This document shows, in pieces, positions 2,564-50,772 of a stretch of 64,000 nucleotides of DNA. The DNA is from Laetmonice hystrix (taxonomy: Eukaryota), in the NCBI GenBank assembly GCA_965235115.1, contig OZ249442.1:13888001-13952000 (forward strand), read 5' to 3'. Within the stretch, counting starts at the first letter, position 1, and each line of letters opens with the position of its first letter. The notes beneath the pieces are model-generated. The model did no database searches. It was not told the origin of the DNA and worked only from the letters and a program-made list of their open reading frames with translations. The position numbers were made by a program, and so were the translations under genes.

Positions 2564-4365
2564 TTACCAATGACCTCCACAGACTTCTATAAACTATTGA
2601 GACCACATACTTGTGGCGACGTCTAGTGACGGGCACAGACTTTGGCCGGGAACACATAATGTTCCCGACATGGCAGTCGACGTAATAACATGGGTGAAGG
2701 ATGAGGAGGGGTGCGCAGTCCGAGGACGACAGACGGGCCGGAGGGGGGGGGGGGGGGTATGGGGTCGGGGGTGGAAGTCGATGGGGGGTAGATTCCATGG
2801 TTGCATAAGATATATGAGAAAAGGGGACTGATTTCAACATTTCTATTCTGAGAATCCGAAATTTTCAAAATTTATATAAAAAGAATATGTAATGAAAGCG
2901 CGTAAGTTTACATTGTGAATAGAGTTTAAATACATAACAGTGACAATGTTTATATAATCAATGAGGCATGATGAAACTGACGATGATATAGATTGAGAGA
3001 TAGTTCTTGTAGTATACACGTATATGCCTACATACCCTTGCACATTTACTTATGTATATTGGAACCTATAATATAGCAGTAGCACGTTATCCATATCGTC
3101 CGCCACACCGTATCCGTTCAAACCATTACTGAAGCGTTCACGAGACGATGTTCCAGACGAGAATCCCAACAAATTAAAACTCTGAAAAGAGCAAAAACAA
3201 ACGGGCGTGCATGGTACAGGCAGGTTCCACTTTCAAAGCCTTCTTTACATTTTTTTACATACAAAAAAGTCGCGAACATGTGCCATAACTTATCAGCACG
3301 ACTTGTTTCGAAATCGCACATGATTCTCTTTCGCCTTGGTTGGTGGGATGACGAGGGCGGAGTCGGACATATGGCTTACCTGCTGCGCTCTGCAGCCTTC
3401 TCATGTTCGTATTGCATACATCGGCATGCATTCTCGTGCCTTGCACGTGCATCTGCATGAGTGCAGCGTGGTTTGATCAGAATCCGGTAGTAATACGTCA
3501 TAATTACCTCAGTCATGTGAGCAGGTTACACGTGCGCCCTCTATAGGCTGATTATAGAACCACACAGGCACCTCCGCCATGAGCCGGCAGATGCCATTTC
3601 CATTATTCGGGCGTATAGAATACATTGATTACAGTAGTGTAGAGACCTATACTGAGCTGCAGAATTAGTACAAATAATTTGTTCATTTGATGTGGAAGAT
3701 GGCTGCGGTTTAGGATAAATCTGTACTTGACATTATACATTTATTTCGTCCAATAAACTGAAGTCAATAACATAAAGGACCTATATCGTCAGTGATATTT
3801 TGCCCACGTTCGTAAAAACAATTTAAGGGAGATTTCATCGGGCATCATCCATATGCCATACCGTATTCTAACGTTTAGAAGTTATTCCCCTGTATTTAGT
3901 GAGCATATTATTAGGGTGCACGGTGTGGGCTTATGGTCGTGTTGTGATATATATATAATTTCTGTTCCTTTCCTGAAGAACCATTCAGAGGTAGTTTTAC
4001 AAAGTGCAACTCATTTTGTATGACCTTACATTACCTCTTTTACCTAATACCCATGACGTATATCAAGGGTAAACCTAAATACCCGACCAGCGGTGAGAGT
4101 ATACGGGTATAAGCTACCCCATTAACCTGCTCACCCCGGCTCCCGTGTCTCGGTAATGTCCCACCCAGTAATGTTTATAGACTGCGCGCCTGTTCCTAGA
4201 CCCGCTCCTGTAAACAGGTGATGGAAGCCAGATCGCCGTTACCATGGCAACCAACAGGTGAAGGTGTCGTCTTGACGAGCTTGGAGACATTTGCTGCAAG
4301 ATTCTTGAGGCCAATCTGGCATAAGGATCCGCGCTTAATACTTGTTAGTATTTTAGCAACACCTG

Positions 4366-4542
4366 GGCCCGTTTGTTAGTTTGTCATTTTACCAATCTTA
4401 AGACTGGAATTTTAAGACTGACTTGTGTTATGGTCTCTCATTGGTTGACTTCATTTGAAGGACCAATCAGAAGCTCAGAAACAAAAGTTCAGTCTTAAGA
4501 TTTGAATCTTAAGACTTGGTTTGCAAACTAAAAACCAGGGCC
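4366..4542. mobile_element. MITE-like element with imperfect terminal inverted repeats
   Basis: Left ggcccgtttgttagtttg versus reverse complement of right end ggccctggtttttagtttg; subterminal tcttaaga/ttttaaga motifs on both arms; TSD unclear. Confidence 0.4.
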
Positions 4543-5463
4543 TGGGCACTGTTATAAAGGGTTAACACGTATCATATTTAATATTCGGTACTGCTCGTGC
4601 ACCAAGAATAACAGAAGTTACTTTGCTGTAGTCAAAGTGTTATGTTCAATGTGGTGTAGGCCTACATGTACATGTATATGTTTTGATTGTTTCTCGACCA
4701 ACATGTAAGTATTAATACGGTTCTTGTCCTGTATATTGTGAGAGACAGGATTTGTGTTGTCATGGTTTGGAAGGTATTTTAATCTCATTAAAAGGTCAAC
4801 ATTCCGTCGATGCGAGCGGCCAAGTCCAGATCACTGGCGCTATCGTTGACGTTCCGTAGCTGGTGTTCGTCCGTCTGTTTACTGTAGCAATTAGTGGAGG
4901 TGATGGACGAACGGTCAGTCGACGGGGAAGACGTTCTGGTGGGACAACGGTCTCCGTCCATTTCTCACGCAGTCTCGCTCAAAGTGCGCCACCCGCCAAC
5001 GTCCGATCGTCTGCTTTTAGCGACCTGCTGACACCACGTGACTGGTCCCATTTTCACGAACACGCCGCGGCGGCTTGTAGCCGTCGATTCGATCTGTCAC
5101 CAGCCCGATTTCCACCTGAAACAGGGGGTTAAAACGTCCGCCCCATCTTCAGTTGTCATTATACGACATGAAACGCAGCGCGAACGCGTCATTCTCGCCT
5201 GGGAACGAGACTCCGCGGGATTCTCAGCGCCCCCTACCGACAAACTAAACTGCGACAAATTGGCGCGGCAATTCGGGAGGACGTAGGTGGAGGTTATTCG
5301 AAACCAGTTGGTTCCATGTTCAGGTCATCCTGTCAGCCGCTGGGGTGCTGCAGTTCAGTGATGCTCACTGCCGGAATTCAAACTGCTTTCTAACATCGTC
5401 TTTAATACTCAATACACGTGAATAAATCACATCTCGATGACGGCTTCCTGTTCAGGGTCGGCC

Positions 5464-5908
5464 GTCAGGGTGTAGGCACTGGTTGTCAGGGTGTAGGCAC
5501 TGGTTGTCAGGGTGTAGGCACGGGTTGTCAGGGTGTAGGCACGGGTGTCAGGGTGTAGGCACTGGTTGTCAGGGTGTAGGCACGGGTTGTCAGGGTGTAG
5601 GCACGGGTGTCAGGGTGTAGGCACTGGTTGTCAGGGTGTAGGCACGGGTTGTCAGGGTGTAGGCACGGGTTGTCAGGGTGTAGGCACGGGTTGTCAGGGT
5701 GTAGGCACTGGTTGTCAGGGTGTAGGCACGGGTGTCAGGGTGTAGGCACGGGTTGTTAGGGTGTAGGCACGGGTTGTCAGGGTGTAGACACGGGTGTCAG
5801 GGTGTAGGCACGAGTGTCAGAGTGTAGGCACGGGTTGTTAGGGTGTAGGCACGTGTTTCCAGGGTGTAGGCACGGGGTGTCAGGGTGTAGGCATGGGTTG
5901 TCAGGGTA
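5464..5908. repeat. Minisatellite, 20-21-bp unit, about 21 copies
   Basis: Unit gtcagggtgtaggcac(t/g)ggtt. Confidence 0.96.
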
Positions 5909-6971
5909 GGCTATTTGTGTCAAGAAGGTATAGAGATCCGATGTTTAAAAAGAATACCAACCCTTTACTATACAGAGAAGCTCATTTGGTTTTTTTTGTT
6001 GGAGAAAAGGCGGCGATGTCTCTGGACTGCATAAAGGTCCTAGGCCTAGTAAGAATTGCTGGGGAGGTGGAGGGATGCTCAAAAGTTGCAAAGCAAGTGT
6101 AGATGCAAGAAAGTACCTTCAGAGTGTAGATCAAATGTCCATGTTATTGCGGGAATATAGACAGTTTCCTCCCATCCCTCATACAGAACCCCACAAGTGA
6201 ATCACGACGTTATAGGTCCACATTACGACCCCCACATGCCCAGCCTGTATCCATCTTTTCTGGACACCTTGTTTATGTTTATGTCATCCAGCCCATTTTA
6301 CCCTTCCCGCTCCTCGGCCCAGACGACCCCTTCCTACCACATGTTGGCGCCCTGCCCCACAGCCTAATGACAGCCACCAATATAAATGATCGGCTTATGT
6401 TCGATCGCTCCATCGAGTCGGCTCGAGGCAGTCGTGTGTCTCACTTGGCCACATGTGTCCGCCCCGCCAGATCACCATTCATTTGTTTGTCGATGCACTT
6501 GTATATTTTGAAGGAACGATCTTCAAGCTATTCTGGTTCCGTGCTGGAAGTGTTAATTACTGATAGGATGGCGACAGGCTGCCGTAGCCACTCGTGTGGA
6601 TGGATACATGGCTATAGCATATACAAACAGGCGGCCAATTTGAATGAGCTACCACGTGTTTTTCTCCTGAATGCACTGAACCGCCTCAGCATCACCATAT
6701 GGCAAGAATGATGTACAACTTTACGACAGTCACTATGTTGCTTCCTTGCTTGGACAGTGAAGCGTGAATCGACAAGCAAGACTGCAACGAACTACACTCT
6801 CCTAATTTTAGGTGTCACGTACGTTCTTCTGACGACCCCGAAAACCGTGCATTAATTTTGTTTTGCTGGGAATCATAAACTCTACGCGATCAGACCATTT
6901 GTATGCACCTTATCATCCAAAGGATCCCATGGCATATAGTATTATAAGTCCTAAAGTTGATAAGCAAGCGG

Positions 6972-16690: not shown

Positions 16691-17284
16691 ACCTCTAATA
16701 CGTTATATTCTGGTAGTAAGCTTTGACATGAGTGTTTTTTATGTAGACACTTGTAGATGACGAAAAGGTATACGTTATGGGAGTAGTCAAGTGAAACACT
16801 TTGTGGCAAGGGGATAATACTCATTTAACCTCTGCCACGAACACACTTCAAGTACCATTCTCCAGTCAGACTTAACACCGACAGTGTATAGATCAGATTA
16901 ATTTATCACATTTTCCCATGGGAAACATATTCGGAAGACAAGCGAGCCCTGTTTTTGGCAGGAGGTTCAGAAAATGGACATCATGATCAATCAGCAGCCT
17001 GCTTCCCCATTCAGAAACTGAGCAAGCGTATATTTCACGCATATATATTCTCCATTCATGCCAGCCCCGGTAAATGCCAGAAATATTTTTAAAAACATGT
17101 ACATTAAATAATACTGAATTATGGCTGATATATATAAGAAATGATTTGACGACAAGTTCATAGTCAGACTAAACAGCACACGATTTGGCAAGACATTGCA
17201 TAGCATCAATATAAGGAAATATAATAGCAATATTCCGCAGATAATAAAATATATAAGGAAAAACTACTTAATTATTTTGCGTTC

Positions 17285-18687
17285 TTATGCTATGCTGCCT
17301 GAGCAACCGCCATCCTGATGCTTCAGCAGTAGGGACATTCTTGAAAAAGTTTTCGTGCAAGCTCTGCAATTATATTTCTTAATGTCTGTGTGTGTCTGAA
17401 GGTGAGCGCGCAGGTTGGAGCGGTCAGCAAACGATCGTCCACAGTGAGCGCACTGGAAAGGTTTCTCTCCTGTGTGCGTACGTATGTGACCTTGGAGTAA
17501 CCAAGGTCGCGAGAAGGCCTTGCCGCACAACTGACATTTACACGGCAACGTGTGCGTGCGGATGTGCATCTTGAGCGCGCCCAGGCTCACGTACGTCTTT
17601 TCGCAGTATTTACAACTGAACTGTTTCTTGACTTGCGACACGCAGTGAAATTGCTTGTGCTTGGAGAGCCCGCTGAAGGTGGCGTAACTCTTGTTACACG
17701 CCTCACACTGATACCTGGGAGGGTTCATTGTTCTCCTACTGGGTGCTTCCCTCGCCAGGTCCATGTTTAGGATCCTCATGGCCGTGTCGGCGCTGTTACC
17801 AACATTCCATGGTAAACTCGACCTCTTCTCCGGCCTCGTCTTCTCAAGCGACGCGTCGCTTTGATGTAACGCCGCCTTTTTAATACCAAGATCTAGCGGG
17901 ATTGGGTGATCAGGAAATACCGCGAACTTCGCCGGAGCGAATGGTCGTTCAATAGACGCGATCTTTCGCCTCGCGATCGATGCCGAAGAGTTGGCGCCGC
18001 CGCCATGGAGGGCGTCCGTCGTACGGGGGCGTCTCATGGGGGTGAGGGACTGGAGGAAACGGGGCGTGTGTGGGGACACGGGAGGAGGAACATGAGGAGG
18101 AGGGGGAGGAGGGGAGCGCTGGGGGAGGTGGGAGACAGCTGGGACAAGTCCAGTGAAGGCACCAGCCCTGCCCGGTGCCGGTCTGTACACGTGCGGCCGG
18201 TGCGGGTAGGGGACGGCGCCGTGGTGCCCCACACCGCGGGTATCGGACTGGCCCGGGTAGAGATCCACTCGGCCGTGCATTGCACGTGTGAACGGGTGGT
18301 AGACGGCGGGCATGTGTCTGGTGGCGTGGTGTATGTGGGCCTGCTGGAGCTGGTGGAAGCTGAGCGCCAGGAAGGGATGAGGGGAACACATCGACTGGGG
18401 AGACAAGTCCCTTCTCTTGGCTACCTGTAGTCGTCTCTTCACCTCGGCTTGACCCCTCATGGCGTCCGCCCACAGCCTCGTCCCTTTCTGGGGTTTCATC
18501 AGCCCCGGGGTGTGTGTAGGGGGTAGTGAAGGGGCTGGTCGTGGCACCCTGATACCGACGGAGAGCTCACACGTCCCGGGAGTGGTAGGATTGACCGCCG
18601 GCGTGGCTCCGTTAGAAGGCGGGGTCGGCTCGCCCACACACCCGCCCCCTACACACGACACGCCCTCACTGACCACTGCCGTGGGAC
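17285..18687 (-). CDS. snail: Snail-family C2H2 zinc-finger transcription factor, paralog a, exon 2 (Pro/His-rich region plus 5 zinc fingers)
   Basis: ORF ends [25 protein letters not shown]...[64 protein letters not shown], the Snail (not Scratch) finger array with a terminal CCHC finger. Acceptor aatatatttccag|GT at 18688/18687 is in phase with exon 1. TAA stop at 17287-17285. Confidence 0.96.
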
Positions 18688-21535
18688 CTGGAAATATATT
18701 GCTGGAAATTATGTCATCATCAGCATTCTTCTGGTATGATTATTTATGATATAAAATAATGTCCATGATGCACATTTAATATTCAGGATCACATATAGTC
18801 ATGGCACTGAAGGAATCATGCTCTCATTATATTCGTGTGCCATTATCTCAATGATATTGTTAACATGCAGCTGTTTAAAAATTCACAAAAACAGAGGAAC
18901 CCCTCCAGGATGACCCGAACCCTGTAACTGTCAGTGCACCATCAGATACGATGACCCGAACCCGCAGTCATTGCACCCTATACGATAACCTGAACCCTAA
19001 CTGTCATTGCACCCTATACGATAACCTGAACCCTAACTGTCATTGCACCCTATACGGCAACCTGAACCCTACTGCCATTGCACCCTATACGATAACCTGA
19101 ACTCTAACTGTCATTGCACCCTATACGATAACCTTAACCCTACTGTCATTGCACCCTATACGATAACCTGAACCCTAACTGTCATTGCACCCTATACGGC
19201 AACCTGAACCCTACTGCCATTGCACCCTATACGATAACCTTAACCCTACTGTCATTGCACCCTATACGATAACCTGAACCCTAACTGTCATTGCACCCTA
19301 TACGGCAACCTGAACCCTACTGTCATTGCACCCTATACGATAACCTGAACCCTAACTGTCATTGCACCCTATACGGCAACCTGAACCCTACTGCCATTGC
19401 ACCCTATACGATAACCTGAACTCTAACTGTCATTGCACCCTATACGATAACCTTAACCCTACTGTCATTGCACCCTATACGATAACCTGAACTCTAACTG
19501 TCATTGCACCCTATACGATAACCTGAATACTAACTGTCATTGCACCCTATACGATAACCTGAACCCTAACTGTCATTGCACCCTATACGGCAACCTGAAC
19601 CCTAACTGTCATTGCACCCTATACGATAACCTTAACCCTACTGTCATTGCACCCTATACGGCAACCTGAATCCTAACTGTCATTGCACCCTATACGATAA
19701 CCTGAATCCTAACTGTCATTGCACCCTATACGGTAACCTGAACCCTAACTGTCATTGCACCCTATACGATAACCTGAACCCTACTGTCATTGCACCCTAT
19801 ACGATAACCTGAACCCTAACTGTCATTGCACCCTATACGATAACCTGAACCCTACTGTCATTGCACCCTATACGATAACCTGAATCCTAACTGTCATTGC
19901 ACCCTATACGATAACCTGAATCCTAACTGTCATTGCACCCTATACGATAACCTGAACCCTACTGTCATTGCACCCTATACGATAACCTGAACCCACAGTC
20001 ACCCTCTACGATAATCTGAACCCTACTGTCATTGCACCCTCTACGATAACCTGAACCCTACTGTCATTGCACCCTATACGATAACCTGAATCCTAACTGT
20101 CATTGCACCCTATACGATAACCTGAATCCTAACTGTCATTGCACCCTATACGATAACCTGAACCCACAGTCACCCTATACGATAACCTGAATCCTAACTG
20201 TCATTGCACCCTATACGATAACCTGAACCCTACTGTCATTGCACCCTATACGATAACCTGAACCCTACTGTCATTGCACCCTATACGATAACCTGAACCC
20301 TACTGTCATTGCACCCTATACGTCAACCTGAACCCTACTGTCATTGCACCCTATACGATAACCTGAACCCTAACTGTCATTGCACCCTATACGATAACCT
20401 GAACCCTACTGTCATTGCACCCTATACGATAACCTGAACCCTACTGTCATTGCACCCTATACGATAACCTGAATCCTAACTGTCATTGCACCCTATACGA
20501 TAACCTGAATCCTACTGTCATTGCACCCTATACGATAACCTGAACCCTAACTGTCATTGCACCCTATACGGCAACCTGAACCCTACTGCCATTGCACCCT
20601 ATACGATAACCCGAACCCTACTGTCATTGCACCCTATACGGCAACCTGAACCCTACTGTCATTGCACCCTATACGATAACCTGAACCCACAGTCACCCTC
20701 TACGATAATCTGAACCCTACTGTCATTGCACCCTATACGATAACCTGAACCCTACTGTCATTGCACCCTATACGATAACCTGAACCCTAACTGTCATTGC
20801 ACCCTATACGATAACCTTAACCCTACTGTCATTGCACCCTATACGATAACCTGAACCCTAACTGTCATTGCACCCTATACGATAACCTGAACCCTAACTG
20901 TCATTGCACCCTATACGATAACCTGAACCCTAACTGTCATTGCACCCTATACGATAACCTGAACCCTAACTGTCATTGCACCCTATACGGTAACCTGAAC
21001 CCTACTGTCATTGCACCCTATACGATAACCTGAACCCTACTGTCATTGCACCCTATACGATAACCTGAACCCTAACTGTCATTGCACCCTATACGATAAC
21101 CTGAACCCTAACTGTCATTGCACCCTATACGATAACCTGAACCCACAGTCATTGCACCCTCTACGATAATCTGAACCCTACTGTCATTGCACCCTATACG
21201 ATAACCTGAACCCTACTGTCATTGCACCCTATACGATAACCTGAACCCTACTGTCATTGCACCCTATACGATAACCTGAACCCTACTGTCATTGCACCCT
21301 ATACGATAACCTGAACCCTAACTGTCATTGCACCCTGTACGACAACCTGAACCCCACTGTCATTGCACCCTATACGATAACCTGAACCCACAGTCACCCT
21401 CTACGATAATCTGAACCCTACTGTCATTGCACCCTATACGATAACCTGAACCCTAACTGTCATTGCCGCCTCCAGGGAATACGATAACTCAAACCCGAAC
21501 TGTTAGTGAACCCTCCAGGTATAACACGAACCCAC
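18688..21535 (-). other. Phase-1 GT-AG intron of snail-a (2848 bp)
   Basis: Canonical donor and acceptor restore one continuous SNAG-to-zinc-finger frame. Confidence 0.88.
18955..21462. repeat. Intronic minisatellite, 35/36-bp unit, about 70 copies
   Basis: Unit cattgcaccctatacgataacctgaaccct(a)actgt. Confidence 0.97.
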
Positions 21536-21674
21536 CTGTGTCCTTTGTACCGGCCACGTCTTCCTCCTGTGTAACCGACTGGTCACCCGACCTGGAGTCA
21601 CCTACTGGAGGTGGAATCCTCCTGGTTGTGCTTCCACCCCGTCCCTTGTTTTTGATCAAGAACGCCCGCGGCAT
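21536..21674 (-). CDS. snail: Snail paralog a, exon 1 (SNAG domain)
   Basis: Starts MPRAFLIKNK (SNAG). Donor ACAG|gtgggt after 46 codons + 1 nt (phase 1) joins exon 2 in frame as G|GT, giving 513 aa. Confidence 0.93.
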
Positions 21675-43615: not shown

Positions 43616-45015
43616 TCATAGACATGATCCACAACCTCCATCTTCGTGTTTCAGTAAGAGAGACATTCGAGAGAAAGACTTTGAACAGTTTCGACAATTA
43701 TATTTTTTAATGTCTGTGTGTGTCTGAAGGTGAGCGCGCAGGTTGGAGCGGTCAGCAAACGATCGTCCACAGTGAGCACACTGGAAAGGTTTCTCGCCTG
43801 TGTGCGTACGTATGTGACCTTGGAGTAACCAAGGTCGTGAGAAGGCCTTGCCGCACAATTGACATTTGCACGGCAACGTGTGCGTGCGGATGTGCATCTT
43901 GAGCGCGCCCAGGCTCACGTACGTCTTATCACAATACTTGCAGGTAAACTCCTTTTTGATGGTGGACGTGCAGTGAAACTGCTTGTGCTTGGAAAGTCCG
44001 CTGAAAGTCGCGTAGCTTTTACCACAAGCCTCGCATTGATATCTCGGAGGGTCGCTGTCGCGTCTTTTCTTTGGCATCACGTCCTTGAGGTCGTTCATGT
44101 CCAGCGGGACGTTTTCGATCCCCCAGGGGATCTTTGGTTTCACACGCTCCTCTGGGGCCGCATTGTCTTTCCACGGCTTCAGGTTTTGTTCTTTGATGGT
44201 CGTTATGTTGAGAGGCGCAGGCTGGATTCCCTGCATCTGCGAGTAGATGGAGTACTGGATGTCGGCTGCGCCGCGGGCGTAGTCGGCCTGTAGGGGGCGT
44301 TTTTCACTGAGAGCGACACCTGGCGTGCAGTTTTGCGCGGGATGTCTCTCGCTAAGCGACACTGGGAACCTTGACGGAGGCCCGGCGGGATAGCTCGATG
44401 ACGTCACGGATGACGTTGATGACGAGTCGGTAGACGCCAGGGGGAGTGACGTCAGGTGAGGAGGGAGCCTGGAGGGATGCTGAGGGAGGAGATCAAAGGA
44501 TGGGACGTGTCGGTGAGAGGAGGAGGGGGAGGAGGAGGACACCGCCGGTCGATCCCTTGACTTGGACTCGTAGTCGAGGACAGGTGGCGGTCTTGGCACC
44601 CTGTCGGATCCAGCGAGGCCGAGCCGGTGGTGGTAGGACGGTGGACTGGGCGGGAGGCGAGGGTAACACCGTGGGTATGGCTCGTCCCGGTGAGGGGCCC
44701 AGATCCTCGGAGTCTGGTAACTACACCGTCCCGGGCTGAGCCGGTCCCTGCAGGTATCAGCAACCACTGCCCGGCAAACCTCATCCAAGTGGCCGGTCGT
44801 GTAGAGGTGGTGGGCGGTGGGGAAGAGCCGGTGAGTGGGGCCAGCGGCCGCCGGGGAGCGGGCCACTAGGAGCCGGTCGGGCTCGCTCCCAGGGTCCGGT
44901 GATATCTGCCCCAAGGGATGCGCCTTTGTGAGCGGCCCGACGGGCACCGATCCTTGGGGCGGGGTCCTTTCGGCCAGGTAGGCGACGTACCGTTCCTTTG
45001 TCTCAAGTGGCACAC
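43616..45015 (-). CDS. snail: Snail-family C2H2 zinc-finger transcription factor, paralog b, exon 2
   Basis: ORF ends [25 protein letters not shown]...[15 protein letters not shown]. Acceptor cttttgttgtttccccag|GT at 45016/45015. TGA stop at 43618-43616. Confidence 0.96.
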
Positions 45016-47382
45016 CTGGGGAAACAACAAAAGAAAGACAATACAGGAGCGGTTAATCAAAGGACACTTGATGAAGGAGGCCACAACCACTGCAGTCTGT
45101 GTGACAACAACCTGTTGGGAAGTTTGGACATCAAAGGCCAATTATCTCCTTGCTTTTACGAGTATATACGTGGGAATATCTCAAGGTGCGTTTCTTAAGG
45201 CGAAAAATGATTAAAGTACACTGAAACGTTGCCGATGGATATGTGACCCCAAGTTCAATGTCAATATTCTTCTACTTTAATTGGGCTGTAAATAGTCCGA
45301 ATCTCAACCAAGCGACAGGTCACAGTGATAAAATATGGCGGGCCTCTCATTTAGACCTTCAATGAAAGTCAAACGGGTTAAATTAAATTTGTCAGGGAAG
45401 ACTGCGACACAAGATGTGTTGAATGTCGGTTTGGGGAAATATACCCGCGGTCAAAGCCTGGCATGTTTATCAAATAGCCACTTGATTGTGGTGATTTGAG
45501 GGCATGACGGGCAGGTATGAATAGCAACACGCTCGATGGTGAGCTAGGTTATTCATGGTCAGTTTATCAGGTATTATTGAGGGCGGGCGGTGTGGGTGCC
45601 CGCACCCGCCTGGCTGCCTGGCGTTGACAGGGTACTGTGGCCACCGCATGGTGACTGTCCACTGCCCAGTGAGGGATGAGTGTTATACCTGGCACACAGC
45701 AAGGCCAGGTGGGGGTCCCACTGCTGGACCCCTACCACCACCCGCCCCCACCCCGCCACAGCCTCTAACACCTGAATGCAAATTAAGGGCGCGACCGGAC
45801 CAAGGAAGTGGGGGTGGTAGAGAGATTGGGGGTGGGGTATAGGGGTTGAGGGGTTGAACCCCTTACAGACAGGCTCATCTATACACCCCCATTGATCATG
45901 TAGACCGACTCCAGCGCCCTCTCACGACCATACACAAGTCATCATCCACCACTGACTCCCTCTCTGCCCACAACCTCAGCCATGTCCTGTCGACTATTCT
46001 CCCAGCCAGCACAAAGGATTCATGGCGTCAAGTTCTGCATGACTATGTGGCTCTACAAGAACCGTGGCCATGAAGGGTCAGCTTCCCTCTCCTCCTATGT
46101 TAAACCTCCTCACTGGTTGACAAGGTGAGAGGTTACAAACACACACGTATTTCGTTTGGTAGTTTTCTGTGGCGAGTAATGACTTGTAGCTGTGATTAAT
46201 TGACTATGGTATCAGCCCTGATTGCTGCCAGCCTCAGGTGTCCGGACCCCTGCAGTGACAGAGTGGGGTAGGGTCGACCAGGGAACCCCCTCGCCAGCCA
46301 TCCGTGGAGACACGAGGAGGGTATTATGATAGGACAGTGACACTCCCTCACAATAAACTCCTCCGTTATATTCTCATGTTACTATAGGCCTGAATCAAAG
46401 CGAATGGGGATCTTATACAAGAGATATTTATACAGTATACGGGCCTACTGCATGCATGGCAGTGCCAGTGTTGTGGTATGGCATTAGGTCCATGTACTCA
46501 ATTAGGTCTTTTCAAGATAAAGAACACCGTGTCTGACCATCATATACCACTTGAAATTGACTGTTTATGTTTGCACAACCTATGCTGGTTTATCACGTTG
46601 AATTCTGACGTCAACCATAACAATCTGTAGGCCGAGAGCAGAGCCCAACTCTAGAGCACCTATAATGTTGATAAGTTACCTGACGAACGAGATAAATAGG
46701 GCCTAATCCTCGCTTGAACATTTTGTAGTTTATGATGGTGCCGTGACCGTGTTGAGGGCACGTATCCATCCAGGCCTGTATGCCCTCCGCCTATATACGT
46801 ATCATACGTCATACGTCGGTCACGCACCGTGAGAGGGCGCGACGCGAGTCGGGCGCACGCGGGTCACGTGAGTTGTCCAGAGGGCTGACCCCACTGAGAT
46901 CGAAGATGGCTGCCGCAGAGCGACACGGGCGGACGGTGGTCAGTGGCCCGGGGCACTCACACCATCAGGTTAGAACTCTGGGACGCTGCAGGGGTCACGC
47001 CAGCACGCGACCAACACTAGCTGTTATGTCTCATTCACAGATTTACATACGCCTACATAATCATTCTTTCATTCTTTCACCATGTCTGAAAGTTCACACT
47101 CCAGCCCATGTCAAGCAGGCCTACATGATGTAGACTATTCTGTATCTTTTCCTTGTCATGGACCTGTAGACTAGCTCAATTTACTATACCAACTGCCTTT
47201 CACTAGTACGAAATATAAGGCACACTGTCATGACCTTTATAATTATTTATATATAATATCATAATGAATATTAGATTATTATCAAGCTAATAAACATGCA
47301 GTGTCAAATATTGCACATTTTTCATAGACTATTTCGTCCGGTAGTCTTGGTGGAACGCAGGACCGTGCATGCGTCGGCGTCG

Positions 47383-48370: not shown

Positions 48371-48596
48371 CTGCTGATCGAGGCCGTCCGATGTCTGTGG
48401 TGGGACAGCAGCCTGCAGGGAGAGTCGGGTCGATGGCCGGTGATGGTGGGGACAATGAACGGGACTTACACGGCCCCACCTCCCCACACACCCCGGCGGC
48501 CACCCCCACACCGGGACCAGCGGCGGCGGCGGCCGGTGGCGGCGGCAGCATCCCACGCTTGGCACCACGTTTCTTCACTAAAAACGCACGAGGCAT
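48371..48596 (-). CDS. snail: Snail paralog b, exon 1 (SNAG domain)
   Basis: Starts MPRAFLVKKR. Donor GCAG|gtaggt after 75 codons + 1 nt (phase 1) joins exon 2 in frame, giving 541 aa. Confidence 0.93.
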
Positions 48597-50624: not shown

Positions 50625-50772
50625 NNNNNNNNNNNNNNNNNNNNNNNNNNNNNNNNNNNNNNNNNNNNNNNNNNNNNNNNNNNNNNNNNNNNNNNNNNNN
50701 NNNNNNNNNNNNNNNNNNNNNNNNNNNNNNNNNNNNNNNNNNNNNNNNNNNNNNNNNNNNNNNNNNNNNNNN
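50625..50772. other. Assembly gap (148 N)
   Basis: Run of N. Confidence 1.

Follow-up and report, generated by a model that had tools for sequence, protein, structure and literature searches.

Very likely recurrent interlocus gene conversion of zinc fingers 2-4 in an old tandem Snail gene cluster of Laetmonice hystrix

The window analysed here is a stretch of 64,000 nucleotides on contig C7 of the Laetmonice hystrix genome (S1), and two genes on its reverse strand, A and B, each encode five C-terminal C2H2 zinc fingers (Pfam zf-C2H2). Positions below are those of the window unless a contig or an alignment is named. The five-finger coding region of gene A, delimited by its open reading frame and a C2H2 pattern scan, occupies 17285-17722 (from the residues PPRY to the stop codon at 17285-17287), and that of gene B, delimited in the same way, occupies 43616-44050 (stop codon at 43616-43618). 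SNAG boxes lie about 4 kb upstream of the finger exons; a six-frame motif scan places MPRAFLIKN at the gene A start codon (21648-21674, reading from 21674), and in gene B the corresponding motif is MPRAFLVKK, reading from 48596. The putative last exon of A should span 17285-18687, as indicated by a continuous open reading frame, an acceptor motif (TTTCCAG) ending at 18688 and a phase (phase 1) like that of B, and the putative last exon of B should span 43616-45015, behind a phase 1 acceptor (TTTCCCCAG) that ends at 45016. Exon 1 of B is predicted at 48470-48596; it begins with the SNAG box and is followed by a GT donor at 48469 whose phase 1 matches the exon 2 acceptor. The two genes apparently have the same intron position and phase, with a phase 1 acceptor directly before a long last exon (18687 and 45015), and this fits one ancestral two-exon structure, though the introns cannot be aligned. 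About 2 kb upstream of gene B exon 1, positions 50625-50772 are 148 N (an assembly gap or a masked stretch). In the part of gene A that encodes its N-terminal region, a purine-rich GGAGG-type repeat at 18075-18121 encodes a proline run; its k-mer depth in sequencing-run contigs is about 100 times that of its flanks (2576-6897 versus 45-64) with many loose ends, and it is a genome-wide simple repeat.

The best database matches come from nemerteans, molluscs, annelids and arthropods and are Snail, Escargot and SNAI proteins, the best named ones being SNAI1/2/3, escargot and Capitella Snail1. Two Scratch-like genes (L005 and L006) lie elsewhere on contig C7 and have only 71% DNA identity. Judged by sequence, the clustered genes belong to the Snail family (Snail/Slug/Escargot) and are distinct from Scratch. 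A DNA search of the whole assembly found four Snail finger regions, all on one strand of contig C7 and within about 112 kb; their finger regions start at contig positions 13881139 (gene C, 6.9 kb left of the window), 13905285 (A) and 13931632 (B), both within the window, and 13993390 (D, 41 kb right of the window).

A tract of nearly identical DNA is shared by genes A and B. In A it begins where the finger 2 hairpin ends and reaches the start of finger 5 (K-T-Y-V-S-L-G ... K-K-Y-N; 17367-17599) and in B it occupies 43695-43927 (offset 26328), also on the reverse strand. An ungapped comparison finds 6 mismatches in 233 bp (at 17378, 17450, 17468, 17510, 17531 and 17540 on the A side), and all six are synonymous in 77 codons whose residues are all identical; this recount reproduces exactly the gap-free alignment and synonymous mismatches reported in an earlier note on this DNA. 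The codons are identical at 71 of the 77 positions, where codon usage predicts 34 ± 4. Among degenerate codons for the same residue, 6 of 75 differ in the tract versus 34 of 51 in the flanks (Fisher p = 5e-12), the latter comprising 20 of 34 on the 5' side (9 of 21 in finger 1 proper) and 14 of 17 on the 3' side (finger 5). The contrast with nearly saturated flanks that the note had described is thus sound, although its denominators differ slightly from these (12 of 26 for finger 1 and 14 of 18 for finger 5). By the Nei-Gojobori method in sliding windows, dS between A and B is 0.13 in the tract, and pS is at least 0.75, which is saturation, in both flanks. A blastn comparison of the two 14-kb loci aligned only 17304-17724 with 43632-44052 (85.5% identity) and gave no alignment of the N-terminal regions, introns or UTRs, as had been stated earlier. 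The codons ATA (17483) and TTA (17498), which the note had held to argue against codon bias, are indeed common to both tracts. One residue often has several codons within the tract (Leu five, Arg three, Thr two, Ile three and Gly three), and at each position the codon matches between the copies. Our own permutation version of the GENECONV test detects an A-B fragment at alignment nt 125-353 (global P = 0.0005), so that both the sliding dS and the GENECONV comparison agree with what had been expected of a converted tract.

The note spoke of two Snail paralogues; A and B do share the tract, but so do all four genes of the cluster. Whichever two of C, A, B and D are compared (six pairs), fingers 2-4 contain stretches of identical codons and the flanks are saturated. 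A core of 60 bases that encodes the finger 3/4 linker and finger 4 (17390-17449; alignment nt 273-332) is invariant among the four genes in the list of variable sites, and Logan unitig depth (below) also marks it. The variable-site table of the four genes shows D alone variant at alignment nt 125-152 and 333-341, C alone variant in a group of sites at nt 222-239, and C and B differing jointly from A and D at sites 212 and 254; this mosaic requires several overlapping events of unequal extent and age. Tract dS values, with the distances between copies, are 0.13 for A-B (26 kb), 0.29 for C-B (50 kb), 0.31 for C-A (24 kb), 0.33 for A-D (88 kb), 0.43 for B-D (62 kb) and 0.54 for C-D (112 kb). Tract divergence grows with distance between copies, a trend that is suggestive only, as the six pairs are not independent. 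With outgroups included, the GENECONV-style test is significant for all six pairs (global P 0.0005-0.014); with the four genes alone only A-B is significant, in a comparison whose power is low, since these genes hardly vary in the tract.

Snail genes of other species were taken from contigs of public assemblies, some of which are labelled as metagenomes. In S2 (GCA_013332975.1) one 52.6-kb contig carries P0032, P0008 and P0024 on one strand and P0019 inverted; in S3 (ERZ21781341) one contig carries P0051 and P0015, 7 kb apart, with P0026 inverted and about 46 kb away; S4 (GCA_022702875.1) contributes P0004, S6 (ERZ25767047) P0023, and S8 (ERZ25070786) P0052 and P0020, which are 6 kb apart. The closest relative of S1 is S5 (ENA ERZ26222911; P0001, P0005 and P0010), and S7 is ERZ26695794; the DNA comparisons cover S1-S4, S6 and S8. 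In the tract, the fraction of same-residue codons that differ is 0.08-0.26 within S1, 0.28-0.40 among the three same-strand S2 genes, 0.07-0.17 within S3 and 0.07 within S8, versus 0.48-0.79 between species for all pairs except S3-S8. Between S3 and S8, 0.37-0.40 of tract codons differ, and this is so for orthologues and paralogues alike. Orthologous pairs are no exception (0.65 for S1 gene D and S6 P0023; 0.53 for S2 P0032 and S3 P0051). In the flanks 0.33-0.89 of same-residue codons differ throughout, with no contrast within versus between species. The saturation of the tract between species means that its third positions are free to change and are alike only among copies in one genome. The low-divergence tract therefore recurs independently in at least three other species (S2, S3 and S8).

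The inverted S2 gene P0019 (L011:10601-11023) has not been homogenised with the genes beside it (a difference at 0.55 of tract codons), and its orthologue in S3, the inverted P0026 (L013:10757-11179), is homogenised with genes about 46 kb away (0.14-0.17); orientation alone does not decide participation in homogenisation. A reverse-transcriptase open reading frame (RVT_1; L013:15611-16372) lies a few kb from the S3 Snail cluster, and the gene table of S7 has RNase H and integrase open reading frames at the same relative position. Mobile elements occur inside these Snail clusters.

Outside the tract the genes record a different history. BLASTP searches with the regions upstream of finger 1 paired the genes reciprocally, one to one, across species, and between paralogues of the same species they gave nothing or next to nothing. 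Gene A pairs with S5 P0001, B with S5 P0005, and D with S5 P0010 and S6 P0023; P0032 pairs with P0051, P0050 and P0052, P0008 with P0015, P0011 and P0020, and P0019 with P0026. A search of the protein database with the N-terminal region of B returned P0005 as its sole match, and so there is no closer relative in the database. In a maximum-likelihood protein tree from which the tract was removed, the orthologue groups have support of 93-100, and the D group joins P0019/P0026 with moderate support (84/89). AU tests on the non-tract protein reject species clades for S1 (p ~1e-136), S3 (5.5e-7) and S8 (1.7e-56). In the tract nucleotide tree, on the other hand, each multi-gene species is a clade (S1 99/100, S2 98/95, S8 91/83 and S3 81/65), the clades are arranged like the species tree, and AU tests on the tract data reject every orthologue clade (p 7e-6 to 9e-3). 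Nucleotide trees of the flanks alone (192 nt, saturated) did not reject species clades (AU p = 0.1-0.2), and the tree of the whole non-tract protein was used in their place. The conflict anticipated between a tract tree and a flank tree is thus present, species-wise in the tract and by orthology in the rest of the protein. The GENECONV-style permutation across species used 11 sequences from four species, leaving out the S8 genes, S3 P0026 and S6 P0023; S3 P0015/P0051 (P 0.0005) and two S2 pairs (0.0075-0.03) are significant, and no between-species pair in that set is.

The assembly was compared over 16900-18300 with Logan contigs, which are built with short k-mers, of four public runs from one sample, probably the assembled one. 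In three runs, contigs of the flanks at depth 31-64 enter the tract by about 30 nt (the k-mer length) and then stop, and the tract interior is present only as short unitigs of 58-92 nt at 3-5 times flank depth. The unitig at 17390-17467, over the four-way invariant core, is the deepest at about five times the flanks (300 versus 56 in run X1). Other flanks are attached through loose ends at 17358 and 17367, of which the one read at 17367 equals the flank of copy B, and tract k-mers attach to at least three different flanks. An alternative unitig with 17530G, 17531A and 17534G has the letters of assembled copy D, and in run X4 a 230-nt contig carries the tract variants of A together with the 5' flank of that gene. 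The depth of the tract and its multiple flanks indicate that the raw data hold several tract copies on different flanks, as assembled. No single molecule in these data runs through an entire tract into both of its flanks. About 20 flank sites in 16900-18300 vary among the contigs of the three runs (e.g., 17068, 17089, 17745 and 17833), which points to a heterozygosity of about 1% in the flanks; the tract has almost none.

Four other explanations of these patterns deserve consideration. The identity could be false if reads of one paralogue had polished or collapsed another during assembly, and the tract is in fact a repeat longer than the short-read k-mers and every run found derives from one sample. 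However, the run contigs were built independently of the assembly and have the excess depth, the several flanks and the A- and D-specific variants just described; four other, independent assemblies show a like pattern in their own Snail clusters, and collapse would have erased the six A/B differences that are retained. The run data speak against the collapse or mis-polishing of which the note had warned, and an artefact of this kind is exceedingly unlikely. The species-wise clustering in the tract tree might alternatively be read as young, lineage-specific duplication with unusually fast divergence of the flanks, which is how published Snail trees have been read (PMC2688512). Against this reading, the synonymous sites of the flanks are saturated, a state that protein-level selection is unable to produce; S5 holds a one-to-one orthologue, with a distinct N-terminal region, of each of A, B and D (S6 has one of D as well); and the monophyly of the S1 genes is overwhelmingly rejected by the AU test on non-tract data (above). 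Recent duplication has next to no probability as the explanation.

The two remaining alternatives concern the third codon positions. Purifying selection at the nucleotide level on fingers 2-4, acting on an RNA structure, a signal for miRNA or splicing, or an antisense element, would account for the constant location of the tract in all paralogues and species examined, and an antisense open reading frame of 60 aa does lie at 17392-17574. A constrained element, however, should be kept between orthologues and not just among paralogues of one genome, and the same codons are saturated between species, including the orthologous pairs at 0.65 and 0.53; the tract tree, moreover, is the species tree. 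The equally low tract dS in orthologues that the note had named as the observation to fear was not found, and nucleotide constraint, although very improbable, is perhaps slightly less so than the other alternatives. A species-specific codon preference, finally, could make paralogues converge on the same codons, and tract GC3 does differ among species (about 0.6 in S1 and about 0.35 in S2 and S3). Yet several codons are used per residue and still match position by position (71 identical versus 34 ± 4 expected), and the flanks of the same genes, with the same codon usage, are saturated, so this explanation is hardly credible. The GC3 values were also inspected for a signature of GC-biased conversion, and none was seen (S1 tract 0.57-0.65 versus flanks 0.30-0.71; in S2 and S3 the tract is below the flanks). 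GC enrichment of converted sequence by biased conversion is frequent but not obligatory.

Very likely, then, the tract is the product of interlocus gene conversion that has recurred in an old tandem Snail cluster and is restricted to the fingers whose protein sequence is invariant. The short tracts, paralogue-specific flanks, linkage, mosaic, distance trend and conflicting trees all lead to this reading. The note had proposed that the duplicates are old and that their core fingers were recently converted ectopically, and dS, the GENECONV-style test, the trees and the run k-mers support this; the proposal was correct but incomplete, in that four genes take part, their tracts form a mosaic of different ages, and at least three other species show the same independently. 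About 175-235 bp encoding fingers 2-4 would have been overwritten repeatedly between copies by such interlocus (non-allelic) conversion, presumably when a break in one copy was repaired with a neighbouring copy as template and without exchange of flanks. Through this repeated overwriting the four genes would evolve as one lineage per species in fingers 2-4. Double crossover is a less economical route, which would also shuffle the flanking sequence.

The ends of the detected fragments are alike in three species (alignment nt 113-131 on the 5' side and, for the longest fragments, nt 308-359 on the 3' side), and the tract ends where the paralogous proteins start to differ, in finger 1, at the start of finger 2 and in finger 5. 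Flanks that are about 60-75% identical may be unable to support heteroduplex formation, and where a conversion replaces residues of fingers 1, 2 and 5 that are specific to one paralogue, selection probably eliminates it. Conversion within the tract should be nearly neutral and self-sustaining, because the proteins are identical there. It could nonetheless carry replacements: all sampled paralogues of S1, S5 and S6 have Ser in finger 4 (GRSF), those of S2, S3, S4, S7 and S8 have Ala (GRAF), and such a Ser may have been spread across the S1, S5 and S6 paralogues by conversion. The D-type gene has the Ser in its finger 4 despite grouping, with moderate support, with S2 and S3 genes outside the tract. 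N-terminal identity of orthologues is 55-56% between S3 and S8 and 45-62% between S1 and S5. With the S3/S8 tract difference (0.37-0.40) as calibration, the last conversion between A and B (0.08) very probably postdates the split of S1 and S5.

Interlocus gene conversion among tandem duplicates is a well-known process. Searches of the literature found no report of such conversion, or of concerted evolution, for Snail genes. The closest analogue is the concerted evolution of engrailed paralogues in hexapods, where the conserved DNA-binding region of linked engrailed-family paralogues has reportedly been homogenised within species, and engrailed trees are said thereby to suggest repeated independent duplication. 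Both cases involve linked paralogues of developmental transcription factors with a homogenised DNA-binding region and misleading trees, but engrailed is a homeobox system of two genes and the Snail case a C2H2 finger array in four; the Snail genes, furthermore, are in tandem on the same strand and their tract ends sharply within one exon. The hexapod case (Peel, Telford and Akam 2006, Proc Biol Sci 273:1733) is cited in a passage of PMC2631020 as conversion that gives spurious phylogenies of linked developmental genes. Passages of PMC2720389 describe mammalian gene pairs kept alike for >100 million years by interlocus conversion; as described there, paralogues are likewise closer than orthologues over long-maintained homogeneous stretches, but the organisms and genes are others, and the Snail case is one short tract recurring across the multi-gene cluster of a clade. 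For the Snail family itself, at least 10 independent duplications have been proposed (Kerner et al. 2009; PMC2688512). In that study the linked snail genes of Capitella, Drosophila and Lottia group by species, fingers 3 and 4 are the most conserved, and the species-wise grouping is taken as recent tandem duplication; the words "conversion" and "concerted" are absent from its text. The clade examined here has the same species-wise grouping, but from conversion among old paralogues, and for this clade the recent-duplication reading would be wrong.

Snail genes have a central regulatory role in the formation of mesoderm, in neurogenesis and in the epithelial-mesenchymal transition. To our knowledge, the zinc fingers have supplied nearly all the evidence on their history, since no other part can be aligned. 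In one animal clade at least, the most conserved part of the Snail fingers records the history of the species and not that of the genes, and paralogues older than the species appear as recent lineage-specific duplicates. The warning that the tract would mislead phylogenies is borne out, since the tract tree follows species and the non-tract tree orthology. This undermines inferences of "independent duplication" from finger-based Snail trees, bears on the arguments about subfunctionalisation that rest on them, and has consequences for assigning orthologues when new genomes are annotated. Any probe, primer, guide RNA or morpholino directed at fingers 2-4 would hit all four genes. The cluster also offers a clean natural example of interlocus conversion whose tracts end where the protein ceases to be invariant. 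The process is known and the example new; the Snail family is newly implicated, and the tract is part of a larger phenomenon than first noted.

More tentatively, and with rather less than even confidence, concerted evolution of fingers 2-4 may be old and general in linked Snail genes. If that were true, a cluster of three or four Snail paralogues would predate the divergence of the sampled lineages, and a sizeable part of the "independent duplications" deduced from finger-based trees, for instance those of linked snail genes in Capitella, Lottia and Drosophila, would be conversion artefacts. Through conversion, changes of DNA-binding finger residues would then also reach all paralogues at once, as may have happened with the Ala-to-Ser change in finger 4 of S1, S5 and S6.
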